From Phallusia mammillata (lineage: Eukaryota): DNA of 64,000 nt. Where the stretch lies: positions 22,878,001 through 22,942,000 of the forward strand of contig OZ281495.1 in NCBI GenBank assembly GCA_965637545.1, in the 5' to 3' direction. The notes under the pieces were generated by a model. It was given only the letters and a program-made list of their open reading frames with translations, did no database searches and had not been told where the DNA came from. A program made the translations under genes and the position numbers. Positions 41,838 to 55,699 of this stretch are shown here, in pieces (position 1 is the stretch's first letter; each line of letters opens with the position of its first letter).

Positions 41838-44800
41838 TTAAATGTTATTCCATTCATGAGTACAATACCCAGTATGAAGTGGTTCTGCAGGTATGCCCCT
41901 CCTAAACAACAATGTAGAGCATAAAATATATTGAGGAATTTTCTTACACATCCTTTGTAACTTACCGAACCATTCTGCAACGATGCTCATGAAGTCTAGG
42001 TGTAGCTTCCTCAACATCATTGACATCTTCAGCACTCCATAGACGCTCTGCTACTGCACTTGCTCTGGGCCTAAATATATAAGTTGTGTACAAAAATACA
42101 AACATTTCAAAACACAATAAATTTTAGACGAACCACAGCCTTGGAGTCACATTGGTACCATCCACATACTCTCCCCATAAACATGCTTCACCACCAATTA
42201 GTAACTGCTTTTGTGCATCAGTTCCTAAAATAAAACAGAAGTTTAGGATTTGTTTTTTCGAGAATGCTACACAGAAATATTTAAAAGTACATAACAATAG
42301 TGATTATATAATCAGACTGGTCCACTTGGGGGTTTAAGAGGTGAAAATGGACAATTCCTTTGTAAAGGTAGAACATTTTTATGAATAACTTACATTGCAC
42401 CAAACAACAAAGCATGAAACTCCTAGCTCATATACTTTAGTCAGCACAGCCGTTTAAAAAAAATACATTTTGAGGGCCTGTAAACCGCTGGGTCATTCGG
42501 GGTCAAACTTCAGGAGGATCAAAAACTAAGATCTGTGTAAAGTCGAATAAATTTAAGGCACTCTTTCTTGACCAAACGAGTACAACAAACCAGCGTTAGA
42601 GAAAAAAATACATACTAAAACAATATGTGTCCCCTTCAGAAAAGGGGACCCATAAAAAACCCACCATTAAAATTGGATGGCTCGTATAAATAATATTTAT
42701 GCCAGTCTTCTCCAGTGGAAATGCGACTGAGATACCATGGAGCAGCAAGTAAGACTCGATAACCTTTTGCTGTCACTTTGGCTAGCTCTTCATCTGGCTT
42801 GTTGTCTTTCCACACTTCAACCACTGTGTTATTTTTGATCTTTTTTAAACAAATAGATTGTATTTGACAAATAGAGTTATAAAACAAACTGTCACATGAT
42901 AATCATCATAGCAATATATTTTTAAAATATGATAAGAAATGCAACTACAACATACCTTTACTCCGTTGTCTATCACTTCTTGCCAAACAATATAGCTGTA
43001 TCCAACACTGGCAGATATGTCCAGAATTTGCTGGATGTAGACAGACTCCAGTGTTGCATAGTCACCTGTGATGTTCTGCGCTGCCATCCACTTTGTAATG
43101 TCTGGATTGGACTTCCTGCAAAATATTACATGCACATAAGCCAAAAACATCTCTTTGCAGACATTTGGTCAAAACTTACCAGCAATTAAAACTGACTTCA
43201 TCACCACCAAGATGAATGTACTGATCATGAAATACACTTTTTACTTCCGTAAACAAACCCTCAATAAAAGTGTAAGTAGAATTCACAGTTGGGTCAATTG
43301 GACCAAAAGTGCCATCTGGTTTTCCATCTGTTTTGTGGTGTTGGAATTAAAACACAACTGTGGCTTGTACAAGTTTTATTTGACATTTTTTATCAATTAA
43401 CTAGAATAGTGGTTTTCCTATATATTGTGAGTTTATATATACTACATCATATTTAACGATGTATCACATATACCATTTACTATATTTATAATGGATATAT
43501 ATTTGGCACCTACATTTCATTGGGTCCCTATTCCTGGCACTTTATAACATAATTGTTTCTGCAAGCAAAATCTAATTCGTCCCCACAGATATGCATATGC
43601 GATTTGGTAACAGTGGAAATAGGGTACAATCATTGTTAGATATTTACCAATTTACTATACACATCATTTGATCTACACATATGATTGTTTTTTCAAGCAA
43701 AAACCCATGGGTCCCCACACGCGTGTTTGTGTGGATTTATGGTAAACAAACATTCTGGTTATTTTTAGATTCTTAAGAAAAAACTTAACCAACTTTAGCC
43801 TTAACCCAACTTGAAAAGGTTTGTATTCTTTTTGCATCATTATAGTCATATAATTACAAAAAACAGTAAATAAGAACAGGAAAAATACTTTCAATTTAAT
43901 CTCATGCTTTGACCTTGACTTCAGGGAAGGGGGCCCATAATAATAGGTTGGATTGGTGTTATTTTGGTTAATGTTTCATAGAAGTAGTTCATATTGAGTT
44001 TTCTTTTCAAAGTGCATCATGAACTGTGAACCTGGCTTATATTTTACTGAATGCAGCATTTACTGTCACATGATACCAAACGTTTGCACAATAAACCTAC
44101 TGGAATAACATGGTGTCAGGAGACCGGCTTGACCTTTACCCCATGACCGGGAATGTCCTGGTGTGTCGAATTCAGGAACTACTCTGATTCCCCTCAACCG
44201 ACCAAACTCTATTACTGCAGCAACATTTTCAGGGGTGTATATGTGAGTAGATGGATTGTATGCACCCTGCAAAGGAAACTGTTATTTATGACAATTCATT
44301 TTGTTAAACTGGGTTACAAAACTTCACCTGGACAGTGAGAATTTAAAACACATTGTTACATTTTAAACACAAATAGAAGTTTGGGTGAACACAAAATGTT
44401 TGATGTTGTTTTGAACCACAATCTTCTTCCACAAAATGCCATACCTTGTTACTTAAATCAGGGTATGTTCTGCTCACAAATGGAAAAGATTGATCATCAA
44501 CTATGTGCCAATGAAACACATTAATCTTGTTGTAAGCCATTGCTTCCTTCCAATAATAAACGATAAAGACACTGACAGCATTTAAATATAAAATTACACA
44601 CAATATACCAAATTCTGTAAAATAGCTTTCATTGGTAGATAGTGCCTAGAAGTATCCAGCAAAATACCACGGTGAGCATATCTTGGAAAATCCAAGATGC
44701 TTGTTTTATTCATGAGGACCTAGAGATTTGAAAGTTTATCAATAATTATTTTGCACAGAAATTAAAAAATGACTGAGGTACAATACCTGATTGGTATCAG

Positions 44801-45538
44801 TTTGCCACAACAGTTGCGAAAATGTTTCCAATCCTGTAAAGCAATACAAATAATGATTACAAAACACAATGCAAGTTTATCATGCATACCTCGTAGAACA
44901 CCCCAAACAGATTGAGCAGTAAGTAGTGCACTATCACCAATCTCCAATGAGTCTAACAAAAGGAAGTGTGCAATGTTAAGAGCAACATATTTCTAAAAAC
45001 AAGACTTACAGCTTTCATTCATATGAAGTGAGGGATATTCTTCACAGGCAGACATAAGATTTACAGTTAAAGTTGTCAGAGATGGTACTGCTCTAGGTCT
45101 GTTAAGGGCAGGAATTCCAAATAGAGAAAACAATCAAACAAACATGTAACTTGTCCTCACCTAAATCGAAGCTTTAACTGTGATGCAGTGTCGTATATCA
45201 GCATCTCATATCGTTTAAAAGCCTCTTCTGTCAAGTCGCACTTGTAGGATGTAGAAGCATATGTGAAGGCAAACTTTTGTACTGCCACTTCGTACACCTG
45301 GAGATTGTAAAATGATGACAATCATAGAAACAATAAATACAGTATAAATGAAACTGACCATAGGTGATAATGTTTGCATTTGTGGTTTAGGCCATACACT
45401 TCCAGGGCTTGTATCGCCAAGCAGTGGTATAAGACGCCCAAGTGCAGAATAATCATCATCAGAAATTTCACTAGGTTGTCTGTTGGCATTAACAGCTAAT
45501 ACCATGACAGCCAAAAAGAATAACACATGAAACCGCAT
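41838..45538 (-). CDS. HEX: Beta-hexosaminidase (GH20, HEXA/HEXB family), tandem copy C, 14 exons, intact
   Basis: Signal peptide [18 protein letters not shown]; [29 protein letters not shown], catalytic [50 protein letters not shown]. All 14 exons traced in frame. Confidence 0.95.
42326..42655 (+). mobile_element. Helentron-associated (HINE-like) element, 5'-truncated, in HEX C intron 11
   Basis: 3' end CAATATGTG subterminal repeat, GTCCCC...GGGGAC hairpin, CCATAA; absent from the same intron of HEX B. Confidence 0.6.
43382..43944 (+). mobile_element. HINE-like element in HEX C intron 8
   Basis: Starts AACTAGAATAGTGG and ends CTTCAGGGAAGGGGGCCCATAA, matching the ends of 46992-47900; absent from HEX B intron 8. 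Confidence 0.6.
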
Positions 45539-45887
45539 TTTACACTACACTATTGATTTAACCTGAAAGCATCATTCACTGTAAAGCCACAAACCATGAT
45601 ATCCATAATATAGTTCAAGATTTAATAATGTTGTATGTGTCACAGCTAATGTAGAGACTGGGCATATATACTCAGCTTGGTCAAGCATACAATTTCCAAA
45701 AAAAACTTATAACAGTTTAATATCATATCTTTACATATACTTTTATCGAATTGATAAAAAGCGCAATTAAATTAGGCAAAGGTAAATTTCATGTCATGAC
45801 ACATTTCACATTCTCTAATCGATAGCTTCTCCTGTTGTTAAACCTCTAGATTTTCTGCTGAGGGTTTACTTGCATTGGTCTGTCATT

Positions 45888-46205
45888 TTATACCTTGCAT
45901 AAAATTCCACTGTAAATAATGAAAAAACAAAAAAACAATTGGATACTTTGTTGCAGCATTGAGCTTTGCTCCTGGTCAAACACTCCAGCCATAGCCGCTC
46001 CAATAATATGAAGGTAAACTTGTTCCTGCTCAATGGTTTTCTCCCTAACTTTTCTAACTTTAAGATGTTGGGGTTTCCCAAGTTGTTTAGGGAAGTACTT
46101 GGTTCTGTCACGAGCACATGACACTAATGATTTATGGTTCTGTGTAATGTATGTAGCATCGACATGACAATTTCGAATCTTTTTGGATTGCAGCATACAA
46201 TTCAA
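45888..46205 (-). other. Unassigned ORF in the duplicated spacer between HEX B and HEX C
   Basis: 105-aa ORF containing EQEQVYLHIIGAAMAGVFDQE; the homologous copy at about 50630-51120 has a stop and an indel. Confidence 0.3.
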
Positions 46206-46715
46206 AGCACCACCCTACCAGTTGCATATATGCATGTGTTTTATAGCATTTGACAACATTGATTTCCGGCAGTTTTAAAATGTAAGGAACACCTCAGGAA
46301 ATAGGCTATTCATGTAACCTAGCCTGCATAACAACGAAGCACAGACTATGCAGTTATTTTTTGTTTTGTAGGTTTTTAGATGCTGGATTTTGATAAGCCA
46401 GTCATGTTTTATTCTGTTTATTTGAAAAAAATATGCATTAGCCTGCAGCTAGCTATGACATTGAGGCTCAATAAAGCAACTGATTGCATCATATAGAAAA
46501 CAGGTGATGCAAAATTACAAACTATGTGTTATAAAGTTGATAAACAATCAATAAAGATTATTACACATGACTATTGTGCATATCAAGCATGTAAGATTAA
46601 TACAAAATTGCTCCATCAAGTAAAACAATTTTTCCCTTTAGGATAAGGGTTGCAACATAAATGACAGTGAAGAAACAACATAAATCAATTATTATGAAAA
46701 ATGTTAAGTTTCATG

Positions 46716-49700
46716 TTAAATGTTTTTCCATTCATGGGTGCAATAACCAGGACGAAGTGGCTCTGCAGGTATGCCCCTCCTAAACAACAATGTAGAGCAT
46801 AAAATATACTGCTGAATTTTCTTACAAATTCTTTGTAACTTACCGAATCATTCTGCAACGATGTTGATTAAGTCTAGGTGTAGCCTCTTCGACATCATTG
46901 ACATCTTCAGCACTCCATAGGCGTTCTGCTACTGCACTTGCTCTGGGCCTAAATATATGGATTGTGTACAAAAATACAAACATTCAAAAAAAACTAGAAG
47001 AGTGGCTTAGCACATATTGCCCTTGCATATACACAATAACCTTTTTTAAAACATTAATATATTTCCCACACTCATTTTATATTGGGTCCCATATCATCCA
47101 CTGTCTTTTATAACCATGGTTGGCTAGTGGGGTAAATGTTGGGGCAACAGGGTTGAACATAACAATCGACAACTTTAAATAGCACACCCCATAAGCTGTC
47201 CAAATTTCATCCAATTCCAACATTGTTTAAAAAATTCACCCTTTCTAGGGGGCTATTGGGGAGTAAATATTGGGGCTACAGGGTTAAACACAACAATTGT
47301 CACCTATAAATGACAAATTCTATAAGCTGTCATTTCTGACACCGTTTAAAAAACTCACCCATTTTAGGGGGTTAGTGGAGTAACTGATGGGGTTCAACAC
47401 CCAAAAGTATATAAATAACCACAATGATCCAATCAACAATCATGTAAAATTTTATCCAAATCGAACAATGTTTAAAATTCTGACCACTAGAGGTGTTAGG
47501 TTATTAGCAACATTCGTTAACAATTCTACTGTCATGGGGCTGTTAATAACCCTCCGACTGGCAAGTGCAAAAACGTCCACCAAGTACTGCACAAACACGA
47601 GTACCATATGTTCAGTTGCCTTTATTATTCTATTACACTACAGAAATCTTTGGTTTGTGGTGTGCAGCAACATACAAAAACGTTTTACACTTTGGGGTCT
47701 AGCGAGTAAATACTGAGGTTATAGAGTCAACCGAAGCAGATGGCACATCTGCATAATTATATCTACCATCTGTTAAAATTTCATCCAAATCCACCATAGA
47801 TTTCATGCCAAAAGTACATGGACAAACTTCAACGGAGAAACAAGAAGAAAAAAACTAAGTAAATTCAAGATGTGTCCCCTTCAGGGAAGGGGACCCATAA
47901 TAAACTTTAAACAAACCACAGCCTTGGAGTCACATTGGTACCATCCACATACTCTCCCCACAAACATGCTTCACCACCCATTAGCAACTGCTTTTGTGCG
48001 TCAGTTCCTAAGATAAAAAAAGATGTTTAGGATTTGTGTTTTCAGGAATGCTATACAGAAATATTTTAAATTGTATATTGATGATCACACTGGTCCACAA
48101 GTTTGGTTGGAACACATTTAAAAAAATAAATAAAAACCCACCATTAAAATTAGATGGCTCGTATAAATAATATTTTTGCCAGTCTTCCCCAGTCGAAATA
48201 TAATCCAGATACCATGGAGCAGCAAGTAAAGCTCTATAACCTTTTGCTGTCACTTTGGCTAGCTCTTCATCTGGCTTGTTGTTGATCCACACCTCAACCA
48301 CTGTGTCATTTTTGACCTTTTTTGACAAATAGTTTTTTTTGGTAAATAGAGTCATGAAACAAACTGTCACATGAAAATCATCATAGCAACGAATTTTAAA
48401 ACTGTGACAAAAAATGAACACATTGCAAACCTTCACTCCATTGTCTATCACTTCTTGCCAAACAATATAGCTGTATCCAACACTAGCCGATATATCCAGA
48501 ATTTGCTGGATGTAGACAGACTCCAATGTTGCATAGTCACCTGTGATGTTCTGCAGTGCCATCCACTTTGTAATATCTGGATTGGACTTCCTGCAAAATG
48601 TTACATGGATGTGAACCGAACACAGCTCATCTTTTTGAAGATATGTGTACAAGACTTACCAGCAATTAAAACTGACTTCATCACCACCAAGATGAATGTA
48701 CTGGTCATGAAATACACTTTTTACTTCAGTAAACAAACCCTCAACAAAAGTGTAAGTAGAATTTACAGTTGGGTCAATTGGGCCAAAAGTGCCATCTGGT
48801 TTTCCATCTGTTTTGCAGTGTTTGAATTAATACACTTAACCATGGCTTGCACAAGTTTTATTAGGTTGGATTTGCGTTACTTTGGATAATGTTTGTTTTA
48901 AGTAGTTTATATTGTGTCTTAATTTCTTTTCAATGTGCATGAACGGTGAACCTGGCTAATATTTTACCAAATGCAGCATTTACTGTCACATGATACCAAA
49001 CGTTTGCACAATAAACCTACTGGAATAACATGGTGTCAGGAGACCAGATTGACCTTTACCCCATGACTGGGAATGTCCTGGTGTGTCAAATTCAGGAACT
49101 ACTCTGATTCCCCTCAACCGACCAAACTCAATTATTTCAGCAACATTTTCAGGGGTGTATATGTGAGTAGATGGATTGTATGCACCCTGCAAAGGAAACT
49201 CTATTTATAACACTTGGGTTTTTGTTTTCTGCCATTTAGTTATCTTATTGTTGAACTAGTTCACAAAACCAAACCTGAACTGTCAGAATTAAAAACATAC
49301 TGTTAGAAGCTTGGGTGACACAACACATAAAATGTTAATGCATTTTCAAACTACAATCTTATTCTTTAGAATGCCATACCTTGCCACTTAAATCTGGGTA
49401 TGTTCTGCTAACAAATGGAAAAGATTGATCATCAACTATGTGCCAATGAAACACATTAATCTTGTTGTAAGCCATTGCTTCCTGCATAATATAAATAAAA
49501 AAGTTACCAATGGTATTTAAATACAAAAATTACACACAATATACCAAATTGTGCAAAATAGCTTCCATTGGTAGGTAGTGTCTAGATGAATCCAGCAAAA
49601 TACCACGGTGAGCATATCTTGGAAAGTCCAAGATGCTTGTTTTATTCATTAGGACCTGTCAGAGATTTGAGAATTTAGCATCTTTCAATATTAAAAAATC

Positions 49701-50472
49701 TGATGGAGAATACCTGATTGGTATCAGTTTGCCACATCAGTTGTGAAAATGTTTCCAATCCTGCAAAGCAACATTAATGATGATTACAAAAAAACAATGC
49801 AAGTTTATCATGCATACCTCGTAGAACACCCCAAACAGATGGAGCAGTAAGTAGTGCACTATCACCAATCTCCAATGAGTCTGTTAAAAAGCAGTGTGCA
49901 ATGTTATGAGCAACATATTTCAAAAATCTAAAAACAAGACTTACAGCTTTCATTCATATGAAGTGAGGGATATTCTTCACAGGCAGACATAAGATTTACA
50001 GTTAAAGTTGTCAGAGATGGTACTGCTCTAGGTCTGTTAAGGGCAGGAATTCCAAATAGAGAAAACAATCAAACAAACAAATAGGTTGTTCCTACCTAAA
50101 TTGAAGCTTTAACTGTGATGCAGTGTTGTATATCAGCATCTCATATCGTTTAAAAGCCTCTTCTGTCAAGTCGCACTTGTGGGATGTAGAAGCATATGTG
50201 AAGACAAACTTTTGTACTGCAACTTCATACACCTGGAGATTAAAAAATGATGACATACATAGAAACAATAAAACAGTACAAATGAAGCTGACCATAGGTG
50301 ATGATGTTTGCATTTGTGGTTTAGGCCATACACTTCCAGGGCTTGTATCTCCCAGAAGTGGTATTTCATTCCCAAGTGCAGAATAACTATCATCAGAAAA
50401 TTGACCAGGTTGTCTGTTAGCATTAACAGCTAACACCATGACAGCCAAACAGAATAACACATGAAACTGCAT
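46716..50472 (-). CDS. HEX: Beta-hexosaminidase (GH20), tandem copy B, 14 exons, intact
   Basis: Signal peptide [18 protein letters not shown]; [11 protein letters not shown], catalytic [25 protein letters not shown]-terminus [21 protein letters not shown]. Closely similar to copy C. Confidence 0.95.
46992..47900 (+). mobile_element. Helentron-associated (HINE/pearl-like) element with internal tandem repeats, HEX B intron 12
   Basis: 5' AACTAGAAGAG; subterminal inverted repeat CACATATTG (47011) versus CAAGATGTG (about 47866); perfect 9-bp hairpin GTCCCCTTC-AGG-GAAGGGGAC (47874-47894); internal repeats of about 130 bp; inserted in an A/T run; absent from HEX C intron 12. Confidence 0.75.
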
Positions 50473-50629
50473 TTTACACTATTGATTTAACCTGAAACAA
50501 CATTTAGAGTAAAGCTCCAAATATGATGCCCATTATGTAGTTTAAGATTTTAATAATTTTACATGTGTAACAGCTTACAGTTTATACAAGCATACAATTT
50601 ATACATAAACTTACAAAGGTTTAATGTCA

Positions 50630-51120
50630 CATCTTTACAAATACTTTGACCAAGTTATTAAAAAACGCATATACATTAGGTATATTTTAGTATCCGTAGG
50701 TTTGCGTTTCATATTCTTTAATCCATAGTTTCTTCTGTATCTCCTGCTTAACTTCTGGATTTTCTGCTCTGGCTTTACTTGATGCACACGGTCTGTCATT
50801 TTATAGCTTGCATAAAATTCCACTGTAAATAAAAAAAGCGATAGGATACTTTATTGCAGCAGTTAGTTGTGCTCGTGGTCAAACACTCCAACCGTAGCTG
50901 CGCCAATAATATGAAGATAAACTTGTTCCTGCTCAAAGTTTTTCTCCCTAACTTTTGTTCTGTGACTTTACGTTGTTGGGGTTTCCCCCTAAGTACTGTC
51001 TTATCAAAGAATACGGATGAGTATACTACGGTCAGTCGGTCATATTAATGGTTTATGGTTTTGTGTAATTTACGTAGCATCTGCATGACAATTTCGATAG
51101 TTTTTGGATTGCAGCATACA
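50630..51120 (-). pseudogene. Disrupted copy of the spacer ORF between HEX A and HEX B
   Basis: Homologous to 45840-46205 (EQEQVYLHIIGAATVGVFDHE) but with an early TAA and a 1-nt indel. Confidence 0.3.
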
Positions 51121-51746
51121 ATTCAAAGCATCACCCCACCAGTTGCATATATGCATGCGTTTTATAGCATTTCATAACATTGATTTCCGGCAGCTTTAAA
51201 ATGTAAGGAAACACGTTACGAAGTGGGCTATTAATGTAGTCTAGCCCTAGCCTACCTAACAACAGAGAACAGCATATGCGGTTAATTTGACGCTAGACTT
51301 TGGAAAGTCGGTAATGTTTTATTCTGTTTATTTGTGAAAGCAACTTTTCAGCCTTCTGGATTGCTTATAAATTTAAGAAAAAGCAATAACTAGCTTGTTT
51401 TGAACTGCGAAAATCACGAACATACAACTTATGGACAAAATTTGAAAGTCTGCAGAAAAACTTTAAAGTTCATGTCAGAAGAAATAACAGAACTGTACAT
51501 TGAACGTGTAGGACTTGATTGCGTAACTGGAAAAGTTGCTTTGCATATTCAACAATCAATAATGACAAAATCAAAAAGTAATAATGAAGGAAATCAAAAA
51601 GCAATGCATGATTTTCAATAAGATACGCTGACTGCAGTTTAAACACAGTGAGCAATTACATTAGCTAGAATGTCAAAAGAATCATACAGAATGTATTGGT
51701 ATATATGATGCAATGAAGGCTCTTGACTTTGTCCTGTCGAACTAGA

Positions 51747-54700
51747 CTAATAGTTTTTCCATTCATGAGGACAAAATCCGATGTATAGTGGCTGCGCCGG
51801 TATTCCACGTCTAAATAGTAACATAGTATGTATTAAGGATAAATTTCCGAAGTCGCACAGGCAAGTTTATTTATTTTTACCGGATCATTCTACATCGTTG
51901 CTGATCCAGCCTTGGATAAGCAGCATCGACATCATTGACCGATTCAGCACTCCAAAGGCGCTCGGCTACAGCACTTGCTCTCGGCCTATGTGTATAATGT
52001 GGTTGAACCGACATACAGGCAATTGACACAGTAATGTAAAACCAAATACAAAAATCAAAATGGTTGAAAACTGAAATAGGAAACGAAACTTTTTAAAAGT
52101 CCTTTTAATAACTTTAACGAAGGACTTATACTAAACTACAAGTTCAATTCTTTTTGTCAACCAATTCAAAAAGTGTTTTTGAGTTCAAAACAGTCTCAGT
52201 TACATTTCTCTGCCTTTTAAACAAAATATTTTTTCATAACGCCGAATATAGAAACGTTAATCCAAAGGGTCTTTAATTACAGCGAGTTTAATTAATTACG
52301 ATGATATGTATTTTTGTAACACTACTTTTTCAGTGGCGTTTAAAATCCACATAAATGCAAATACTAACCACAAGCGCGGTGAAAGATTGGTAGCATCTAC
52401 ATATTCACCCCAAATGCAAGCTTCTCCACCCATCACAAGTGCCTTCTGTTCAGCAGTGCCTAAATTCATTTCACAGATATTTTAACCATGAACAAATGAA
52501 ACATTTCAAGTTTTGTAGTTTACCGTTAAAGTTGGACGGATCGTATTGGTAATATTTATGCCAATCTTGTCCGTACGATATAATGTTGAGATACCAGGGA
52601 GCGGACACAATTGCTCTCAAACCCATTGCAGTTACTTTCGCTACCTCCTGATCTGGATGGTTGTTTTTCCAAACTTCGACAACGGTGTCGCTTTGGACCT
52701 ATGTCGACAAAACGAACAAAAAATAGTCGTAGGTCAAAATAAATCCTTTAAAATACGATTTTCAGATAAAGTAAGGTAAACTGAAGAAGTAGTAATACAT
52801 ACGACCTGTCATTCCAAAGTTTGTTTTTAAATACATTGAGCACATAAATAATGCAGTATTAATATAAAACAGATTGTTGATCTTTCAGTGAAATTAAAAC
52901 TGCCGGTACCTTTACACCATTGTCGATCACTTCCTGCCAAACTATGTAACTGTATCCAATGGTTTCGGATATGTCAATCACGTTTTGAATGTAAACTTGT
53001 TCTAGTTTGCTGTAGTCTCCAGTGATGTTCTTATCGGACATCCATTTGGTAATGTTTGGGTTTGATTGCCTGTGTGCAAAAAAATGTCCCAAACACTTTC
53101 AACACTGATAAGTACAAGTTAAAGTACGAACCAGCAGTTAAACTGGACTTCGTCACCACCCAGATGAATGTAGTTGTCGTGAAACACTTGCTTCACGTCT
53201 CCAAATAGGTTTTTTACAAAGGTGTAGGTTGAGTTCAATGTAGGGTTAATTGGACCAAAAGTTCCATCTGGTTTGCCGTCTAACAACATCGACACCATTG
53301 AATAGCCACCTACGCCTCTTTGTTACGTTTAGTACATACTTGAGTAGCAAGGAGTAAGGAGTCCTGGCTGTCCCTTGCCCCATGAAGTCGAATGGCCCGG
53401 AGAATCGAACTCGGGGATTACCCTGATACCACGCAAACGCGCAAATTCGATCACTGCTGCAATGTCTTCGCGCGTGTAAATATGTGTACGGTCGTCGTAA
53501 GCTCCCTGGTAATACAATGTTGATTTGATCGAGTGCTGACTTTAACAAGCCTGTTTATATTAAGTCGCAGTGCAACAACAACCACTGCTGAAAATGGCAA
53601 CTGGCTGATTAATTTTTGTTTGTTTACACAGAATTGGTAAACTATACATGGTGACGCCCATTTAGTTTCCTGTTTGGTGACAACAATTTAACTAGCCTCT
53701 AATGATTTTATTTTCCTGTTAGTCATTTACAATGTTGTGACAGAGTGCATTATATTTTACTGATATATTTAAAGATGGATAAATCGTTAGCATTACTTTC
53801 CAATCCAAAGGCCCATTATAGAAATTATCGACAAATATGTTTGCCCTTACCTTTATACTGAGATCAGGATAGACATCACTAACATAGGGAAAAGACTGGT
53901 CATCAACAATGTGCCAGTGCAACACATTAAATTTGTTATAAGACATGGCATCCTAAATAAAAAAGAAACACTGGTGTTTACCACACGGCCATTTACCAAA
54001 TAATGTTTTTTTAAACATTTTTATTTGTACTTACAAATACGAAACTAATCCATTACATAGGTGTTGCCAAATACATCAAAAAACCTCAGAACTGTACCAC
54101 ATACATTACACTTTTTTCACTCATTTAATTAAGACAGCTTGTGGTAGGGTTTATAGTATATTTTTTAGAATTGTTAAATTTAGTCTTTTTTTCTAAAAAA
54201 TAGAAAATGCTAGCTATACATGCAGCTGCATGAAACACCAATTTTGTTACCAAAACTTTGAAAATCATGTTTCTATAATTTACATGTTTAGTAATATTTT
54301 ACAACCTACCAAGGTTTGCAAAATAGCATTCAATGGAAGATAATGCCTTGCAGTGTCAATCATAACTCCACGAAAGGCATATCTTGGGTAGTCAATTATG
54401 TTGGTTTTGTTAACCACAACCTATAAACATTACATATCCAATTAAAACAATGTTTAACATCACTTACAAAAAATATAATTTGCATTTTTGTACCTGATTA
54501 GAATCTGAGGCCCACAACAATTGGGAAAAAGTCTCAAGACCTGAAAACCCAAACTATTACAAAGAATTCAAGACTTTACTGGCACATAAGGATCAACAAC
54601 AACATACCTCTGAGTATTCCCCACACAGTGTCAGAAGTCAAACTAGCTTTATCTGCCACATCCAAAGCATCTAAGAGATAAAATCAAATGAAAAACATAA

Positions 54701-55699
54701 GTCAAGAACCTCAATTTTATGATTATTCGAGTGAAAACTACTTACAACTTTCTTTCATGTGGTCACTAGGATAGTCTTCACATGGTGACATCAGATCAAC
54801 TTCCAAAGTTTTGATTGATGCTACATCTCTGGGACTGTAAAAAATATGGTAAAATTAAAATACAATTCAAATGCCACGAACTGCAAATTGGCAAGAGAAA
54901 AAATTGTAACATAATGACAGTAACGGCCATAACCAAATGTTTGCCAAACAATTATCTTTAGCCAAAAAAATCTCTGCTCAGTGAAAAAGTCATTTTTGAC
55001 CAATGTTTTGCAAACTAAAAATAGTACAGAAACTTACAAGTATTTAAGTTTAATGGTGGCAACATTGTTGTAAATTAATGTTTCATATCGTTTAAAAGCT
55101 TCTGTGAGAAGGTCACATTTGTGGGATGTTGAAGAGTAGACAAACTGAAAAGCCTCTGCAACCACAGCATATGTCTGCATATGCAATAAACATGTTATAC
55201 ATTAACTAAAACACACCAATATTTACTGTATTTGTGTAGCTATTAACACTGTTTCTCTTTTAAAAATTTAAAATGCACGTCATTGTGGTAGCCCAATGAT
55301 TTAGCAAATGTTGCAGTAAACATTACTATAACAATTACCAAAAAATTTTTACCTTGTCATACATTCAAAATGTGTAAAAGTTTATTTAATAGTGCTATGT
55401 TTTTAAAAACATTAAATGATAAACTACAACATTTACTTCAATCAGTATTGCATATTGACAACAACAAAATTTGAGAAAAATTTTAACATAGGACATTTAA
55501 CAGCAAACAAGGAAATGTAATAAAAATGTATCATGCTTCACACCTGAGTTGTTGATGAATAATGTTGTGGTTGGGGCCAAACTGAACCAGGGCTTCCCAA
55601 TTCCCTCACATTGATTTCAACTTTTTCTCCTTTAATTTGTGAGTTTGCATTGGCACCAACACAAAAAAGAAACAAACTGAATAAAGCAACAGATTTCAT
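51747..55699 (-). CDS. HEX: Beta-hexosaminidase (GH20), tandem copy A, 14 exons, 537 aa
   Basis: Exon 1 55544-55699 [18 protein letters not shown]; [21 protein letters not shown], catalytic [45 protein letters not shown]. The most divergent of the three copies. From memory it matches the published Phallusia mammillata hexosaminidase. Confidence 0.96.

Follow-up and report, generated by a model that had tools for sequence, protein, structure and literature searches.

Whether a human β-hexosaminidase subunit can use anionic substrates is set by residues N423-R424 in alpha versus D452-L453 in beta (PMC3587417; PMC4774620). R424 of alpha forms an ion pair with the 6-sulfate or sialic acid group, and D452 of beta repels both (PMC3587417; see PMC4774620). 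The beta positions D426 (PMC3587417, Table 1), D452 and L453 are those swapped to alpha residues for binding of sialic acid and of 4-methylumbelliferyl-6-sulfo-N-acetyl-β-D-glucosaminide (MUGS), and the hybrids H1 and H2, which carry D452N and L453R (with D426E as well in H2), were designed to move the binding of negatively charged substrates onto the beta scaffold (PMC3587417). The alpha/beta split underlies Tay-Sachs and Sandhoff disease and informs work to engineer replacement enzymes made of a single subunit. Here we analyze a 64,000-nt stretch of the Phallusia mammillata genome (hereafter the window), in which three β-hexosaminidase genes, A, B and C, form an array at 41838-55699. Two of these genes, B and C, differ at the positions that distinguish the human subunits, and we lean, with some reservation, towards a real shift of C toward anionic substrates.

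An egg and sperm β-hexosaminidase of P. mammillata (CAD57204) was reportedly described by Godknecht and Honegger in 1991 and by Koyanagi and Honegger in 2003. Published ascidian hexosaminidases comprise one from Phallusia and two from Ciona (Hex1 and Hex2; Intra et al. 2008), and such enzymes have been tied to sperm-egg binding and to the polyspermy block (PMC2492878). Vertebrate genes of this family have 14 exons, with exon sizes conserved in a Ciona gene; tunicate genes are sister to vertebrate alpha plus beta, and the HEXA/HEXB duplication is dated after the tunicate split (PMC2492878). A full-text literature search found no paper with a third ascidian hexosaminidase copy or with the pocket dipeptide in tunicates. 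The family and the switch are already known; what would be new is an independent natural recurrence of the switch in a 93%-identical gene pair.

The substrate pockets of B and C differ in charge

The three genes lie head-to-tail on the minus strand, each intact with 14 exons: A at 51747..55699 (537 aa; ATG 55697-55699, TAG 51747-51749), B at 46716..50472 (543 aa) and C at 41838..45538 (543 aa; stop codon 41838-41840). An earlier, sequence-only reading of this DNA had delimited a three-gene array with exactly these limits, from the stop of C to the start of A. All residues discussed below lie in exon 11, which is 175 nt long in each gene (52524..52698 in A, 48142..48316 in B and 42665..42839 in C, where it holds both pocket patches; all minus strand).

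At the position of HexB D452-L453 (HexA N423-R424), codons 437-438 of C (42723..42728, minus strand) read AGT CGC, or S-R, and the same codons of B (48200..48205, minus strand) read GAT TAT, or D-Y; the equivalent codons of A (52582..52587, minus strand) are AAC ATT, or N-I. Read directly from the DNA, these codons bear out the WYL-NI, WYL-DY and WYL-SR assignments of the sequence-only reading, together with the difference it counted between B and C at five of six bases. Two further B/C differences fall directly after the VW motif, at the HexB K425-D426 position adjoining the active-site W424. Here C has AAA GAC, or K-D (codons 410-411, 42804..42809, minus strand), and B has ATC AAC, or I-N (48281..48286, minus strand), so that the I/K difference noticed earlier is accompanied by N versus D at the next residue. 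In A this pair is K-N. Over the four pocket positions, the net charge is -1 in B (I, N, D, Y) and +1 in both C (K, D, S, R) and A (K, N, N, I). Only C combines a basic residue at the HexA R424 position with a non-acidic one at the N423 position (S437-R438). At the HexA E394/HexB D426 position, C has Asp, which is beta-like yet acidic like Glu, and B has Asn.

These positions are equivalent to the human ones, as the sequence-only reading had taken them to be: phmmer aligned exon 11 of C to HexB residues 414-468 (3LMY) without gaps, so that W, Y and S-R fall on W424, Y450 and D452-L453, respectively. The human biochemistry that it had invoked likewise agrees with the published work (PMC3587417; PMC4774620). 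In the same type of search, the top PDB match of C exon 11 was the engineered alpha-like chain 5BRO, which has N-R at the dipeptide. C also keeps the equivalents of the catalytic and substrate-binding HexB residues D240, D354/E355, W424, Y450, W489 and E491 (HexB numbering, mapped by ungapped phmmer alignments of C exons 7, 9, 11 and 12 to 3LMY), and the gene models of A and B contain the same catalytic motifs.

The two exon-11 patches of C would line the pocket around the sugar 6-position, with I-N replaced by K-D beside the Trp and D-Y replaced by S-R beside the Tyr, moving the four positions from net -1 to net +1. Because Asp at the first dipeptide position repels anionic groups in the human enzyme and Arg at the second pairs with them, C should accept anionic N-acetylhexosamine substrates, such as 6-sulfo-N-acetylglucosamine (6-sulfo-GlcNAc) and sulfated glycosaminoglycan ends, that B would handle poorly; B would remain the main neutral-substrate enzyme. 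The pair would then reproduce, convergently and in part, the way the vertebrate alpha and beta subunits divide their work, in the charged pocket only and not in ganglioside or GM2-activator handling, since C lacks the alpha-type GM2-activator loops. The equivalent of the GSEP283 loop is 'NGKPDG' in all three copies, there is no IPV398 insert, and alignment of the alpha chain with C exon 11 needs three more alpha residues (58 versus 55). The alpha/beta-like division of labor proposed by the sequence-only reading would therefore extend to the charged pocket residues of C but not to the activator loops. A tie of this proposed shift to the sulfated glycans of tunic or egg coat, or to the sperm-bound and egg-released N-acetylglucosaminidases of fertilization, is plausible.

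Exon 11 also includes the position of HexB Y456, a tyrosine at the dimer interface (PMC2492878). This residue is Thr in B (48191-48193) and C (42714-42716), Tyr in A (52573-52575) and T, G or L in other tunicate-like genes. At this interface, A may have diverged from B and C.

The pocket changes are derived in C, whose replacements cluster in exon 11

Two further ascidian-like contigs, L014 and L025/L026, carry DY-type genes with the same 'VWI...WYLDY' as B. Because these genes, from two other ascidian-like sources, match B, we take B to retain the ancestral state and the K, D, S and R of C to be derived. When the 40 residue differences between B and C (of 543) were polarized with outgroups, 16 changes fell on each lineage. 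In exon 11, by contrast, there are seven C-lineage replacements (positions 400, 403, 410, 411, 428, 437 and 438) versus one for B. At the nucleotide level, the 1632 coding positions include 100 B/C differences (6.1%), 19 of them among the 175 nt of exon 11, which along with exon 14 is one of the two least identical exons. When 100 differences were placed at random 20000 times, an adjacent codon pair received at least five of them in 0.3% of placements (P ~0.003).

The change from GAT TAT to AGT CGC amounts to four non-synonymous steps and one synonymous step, for which a route by way of N at the first codon (D-N-S) and H at the second (Y-H-R) is plausible; the intermediates NY, NH and NR are all present in other animals. 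Comparison of B with C gives a ratio of non-synonymous to synonymous substitution rates (dN/dS) of 0.24 over the whole gene and 0.29 for exon 11. Both genes are constrained by purifying selection.

We examined the dipeptide in 120 metazoan homologues of full length, a large share of which are named, retrieved by a search with a full-length homologue (P0104); the 88-aa open frame around exon 11 of C, used as query, had yielded two proteins. They span rotifers, molluscs, annelids, a brachiopod, arthropods, echinoderms, a hemichordate, amphioxus, fish and frog, with no named tunicate protein among them. NY (58 proteins) and DY (34) are the common forms, NR occurs in fish only, and SR is present in one protein. 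Across animals the second position varies, with Y, L, I, H, G and D all represented, and Arg at this position appears from these sequences to be rare and derived. The full-length hexosaminidase with 'WYLSR' (P0246, 532 aa, from a Logan assembly) is placed by our tree among DY-type proteins of a non-chordate group and may represent a further independent origin of this Arg.

C is transcribed and spliced

RNA evidence came from four studies of the same organism, with sixteen small public runs in all; four of the runs were aligned over 42600-48400. Of the words sampled from the B plus C stretch, the sixteen runs contain 0.15-0.21, approximately the share expected for the exons of one gene. B is covered over exons 11-14 by full-length spliced contigs (2190 and 1877 nt, zero to one mismatch) in runs X1 and X7 and by a shorter spliced contig in run X10, with introns 11, 12 and 13 removed exactly as modeled. 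For C, a contig in run X2 joins exon 12 to exon 11 (42664-42788) without a mismatch over 125 bases, including 42723-42728, and a second contig from the same run lies on exon 10 with one mismatch. B is expressed broadly. C yields spliced transcripts, but its expression in these samples is weak or restricted. With an intact open reading frame, a dN/dS of 0.24 and this spliced RNA, C is not a dead copy.

What the changes in C may mean

Several observations weigh against a shift of C toward anionic substrates. C has Ser at the first dipeptide position, not the Asn of human alpha, and it keeps Asp at the HexB D426 position, so that its charge gain over B is +2. Positive selection has no formal support: B/C dN/dS exceeds 1 neither in any exon nor across the gene. 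The test for clustering in exon 11 was picked after inspection of the data and gave P values of 0.001-0.005 (binomial) and 0.04-0.22 (Fisher's), varying with the scoring of position 410. A second pair of adjacent codons that differs at five of six bases, codons 35-36 in the variable N-terminal region past the signal peptide (50365-50370 in B, N-E; 45431-45436 in C, R-L; minus strand; a gap in A), indicates that such clusters arise in unconstrained sequence too. Finally, when C was searched alone, no RNA-like run contained more than 0.15 of its words, versus ~0.44 expected for a full mRNA, and its unambiguous contigs come from only one of the four aligned runs.

These points are shared in part by an account in which C is a redundant, somewhat relaxed young duplicate, its S-R and K-D tolerated or introduced by one complex mutation, with charge preference unchanged. 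We regard this as unlikely, though it has a real claim to be considered. A dN/dS below 1 throughout, equal overall numbers of derived replacements in B and C, the N-terminal cluster, the weak expression of C and the variability of the second dipeptide position among animals would all fit such drift. The changed positions, however, are the experimentally defined determinants in human hexosaminidase (PMC3587417), 7 of the 16-17 derived changes of C lie in one 58-codon exon, and passage from DY to SR takes the five steps given above. Moreover, Arg or Lys at the dipeptide is rare in invertebrates yet recurs together with Lys after VW, both in other tunicates and in a second version of teleost exon 11 (below), which points to selection for the combination.

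The exon-11 changes might instead serve another role, such as a preference among neutral glycans or aglycones, a pH optimum, or the pairing of B and C subunits as homo- or heterodimers; this we consider improbable. In hexosaminidase dimers, the partner subunit completes the active site (PMC3587417), B and C carry Thr at the Y456 interface position where A keeps Tyr, and the natural substrates may be egg-coat GlcNAc glycans, given the implication of ascidian hexosaminidases in sperm binding and the polyspermy block (PMC2492878). That Thr, however, is common to B and C and does not distinguish them, and the residues that do are charge changes at the anion pocket.

B and C arose by a recent duplication within tunicates

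We built a maximum-likelihood tree of 41 proteins, ten of them tunicate-like, that included fish and frog sequences and no bona fide tetrapod HEXA; the species labels used here (sp2-sp6) were assigned from the tree and the accessions of the samples. B and C pair as sisters (100/98) on short, near-equal branches (0.034 and 0.035), and the ten tunicate-like sequences form one clade (100/99) separate from those of fish and frog. C therefore groups with B inside a tunicate-only clade and is not an orthologue of vertebrate HEXA. As the HEXA/HEXB duplication is dated after the tunicate split (PMC2492878), the split of B and C is independent of it, in keeping with the earlier suggestion of a recent, lineage-specific pair and with the phylogeny that had been proposed as a check. 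A joins an NI-type gene of another ascidian-like species, sp2 (99/94), which at 77% identity is its closest relative, and 'WYLNI' is shared with P0270/L020 from another species. A is an older paralogue, and its orthologue is present in a second ascidian-like species. The DY-type gene of sp2 has introns of up to 9 kb.

B and C are ~94% identical in coding sequence, their exons being 89-100% identical (exon 3 completely so) and their short introns 74-92%. The spacers upstream of the two genes are duplicated in register (families D12 and D15). Intron divergence is uneven, at ~10% in introns 1-4, 21-26% in introns 5-10 and 8-14% in introns 12-13, which suggests gene conversion at both gene ends. 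With the identical exon 3, this pattern points to a duplication somewhat older than the 94% coding identity implies, and its age is probably blurred by conversion.

The same pattern could be read as C being an old, basic-type (R/K) tunicate paralogue, nearly all of which was overwritten by conversion from B while selection kept the pocket. Uneven intron divergence and the identical exon 3 would be its conversion tracts, and candidate relatives exist: contigs that group with the array carry NR (L011 and L023) or SK (L024) genes, one of which belongs to a tandem array. We nonetheless find this account very improbable. The NR and SK genes have an insertion of one to two residues after 'VWK' that C lacks, and C exon 11 is B-like outside its seven derived sites. 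An approximately unbiased (AU) test rejects C joining the basic-type genes of other tunicates (p 0.0017), though conversion would bias this test, and even the most divergent B/C introns are far more alike than expected across tunicate orders. From this rejection, basic residues arose more than once within tunicates.

Ascidians are highly heterozygous, and the 94% coding identity might prompt the view that B and C are haplotypes of one gene mis-set in tandem by the assembler. That view, which the sequence-only reading had already doubted, is hardly credible given a contiguous sequence without N, the upstream spacer duplicated in register, intron divergence of up to 26%, repeat insertions of several hundred bases that are not the same in the two copies, both forms in one RNA run, and DNA runs that contain 0.74-0.80 of the words sampled from the stretch.

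The large insertions lie in different introns: intron 12 of B (46949..47916, minus strand) is 968 nt versus 63 nt in C, and intron 8 of C (43328..44100, minus strand) is 773 nt versus 213 nt in B. The inserted repeats themselves (47142-47877 in B and 43376-43763 in C) show very high RNA-contig depth, with many loose ends in B intron 12, and three runs share a joint in which 734 bases are skipped and 9 other letters intervene. This depth probably stems from transcribed copies of a dispersed element elsewhere.

A possible coupled exon-11 switch in other chordates

Beyond B and C, the pocket residues change together in other chordate sequences. The teleost hexb-like models P0216, P0221, P0241 and P0242 (594-600 aa) contain the exon-11 segment twice, first as 'VWI...WYLDY' and then as 'VWK...WYLNR'. 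Two Conger conger models (P0236 and P0266) are identical save that one has the first and the other the second version. From these models, the pair looks like mutually exclusive exons that would let a single gene alternate between a beta-like and an alpha-like pocket. Differentially spliced genes listed in one fish study include hexb (PMC8933327), and our full-text literature search found no paper on an alternative exon 11 in fish.

A related arrangement is seen on a tunicate-like contig of 1.97 Mb (ENA ERZ25067590, ctg30447_50x_l), which has two tandem hexosaminidase genes. The first is of SK type (L024:1097-11753). The second contains two copies of exon 11, one NR-like and one NY-like (L027:10616-10792 and L027:10826-11002), only 33 nt apart, a gap too short for splicing from one copy to the other. 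Both copies show an apparent 1-base frameshift that may reflect decay or an error of long-read sequencing.

We offer tentatively, and with rather more doubt than confidence, the idea that a coupled charge switch in exon 11, with Ile or Lys after the Trp and Asp-Tyr versus Asn/Ser-Arg/Lys after the Tyr, has been re-invented repeatedly in chordates. One route would be gene duplication, as in vertebrate HEXA/HEXB, ascidian B/C and the NR and SK genes of other tunicates; the other would be a tandem copy of exon 11 alone, the two versions being spliced in a mutually exclusive manner, as in teleost hexb-like genes and one tunicate contig. If true, a pair of neutral and anionic hexosaminidase sites would be a recurrent selective requirement, and exon 11 a portable specificity cassette.

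Gene models and the hexosaminidase complement of the genome

The array interval is AT-rich (~35% GC), and the window contains no N. Gene models were made by six-frame reading, then by protein-to-genome spliced alignment with full-length homologues from an exhaustive HMMER search seeded with exon 11 of C. All 13 introns of each gene are GT-AG, and start and stop codons were read directly. Exons 5-7 measure 47, 111 and 102 nt and exons 11-13 measure 175, 91 and 105 nt; A, B and C all have the chordate 14-exon structure. PF00728 matches within the array reach 110.5 bits (cut-off 22.3), and the three products are 44-53% identical over ~520 residues to full-length proteins with PF14845 and PF00728, which identifies them as lysosomal-type glycoside hydrolase family 20 (GH20) enzymes of the HexA/HexB clade. 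The models also have hydrophobic N-termini. A tblastn search of the window found no additional hidden copy of exon 11.

A PF00728 search of the 240-Mb genome returned the array and only two other GH20 loci, G000:C2:8487742-8497534 (+) and G000:C1:10784458-10788728 (-) (L016-L019). These carry 'HLHLTDDE(A/G)WR' motifs and are chitobiase-like genes of a divergent animal subfamily resembling bacterial chitobiase, with no relation to the array. We considered them as members of the array family and rejected them, as their models are distant and chitobiase-like. A, B and C are therefore the complete HexA/HexB-type gene set of this organism.

Comparison with known hexosaminidases

The array raises the count of Phallusia-type hexosaminidase genes to three, candidates for the sperm-bound and egg-released activities of the fertilization literature. 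CAD57204 and Ciona Hex1 and Hex2 are ascidian members of the same clade as A, B and C, and the Phallusia cDNA is expected to be one of the three genes. Only 40 residues apart, with pocket differences at engineered positions, B and C offer a compact test of which substitutions suffice to turn a beta-type site anion-accepting. They also show how such a switch can evolve, as the intermediates NY, NH and NR are all natural.

In teleost hexb-like genes, the two versions of exon 11 differ in the same manner as B and C do, but as alternative exons of one gene, not two genes, a contrast drawn from database protein models only. Like human HEXA and HEXB, the ascidian genes share the GH20 family and fold, the 14-exon organization and the catalytic residues checked, and as in the human enzymes one paralogue is acidic at the dipeptide (D-Y in B, D-L in HexB) and one is basic (S-R in C, N-R in alpha); with exon 11 gapless against HexB, the dipeptide maps one-to-one. 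The ascidian pair differs in coming from a separate, recent tandem duplication within tunicates and in being 93% identical, compared with ~60% for human alpha and beta. C also lacks the alpha-specific three-residue insert after VW and has Ser in place of the alpha Asn, and its 'NGKPDG' loop is common to A and B, giving no sign of GM2-activator adaptation. C is in effect a natural version, built on B, of the engineered enzymes H1/H2, HexM and 5BRO, with substitutions at the same three or four positions. The engineered proteins, however, also bring in GM2-activator loops or a dimer interface, and their pocket changes are N/R and E where those of C are S/R and K/D.

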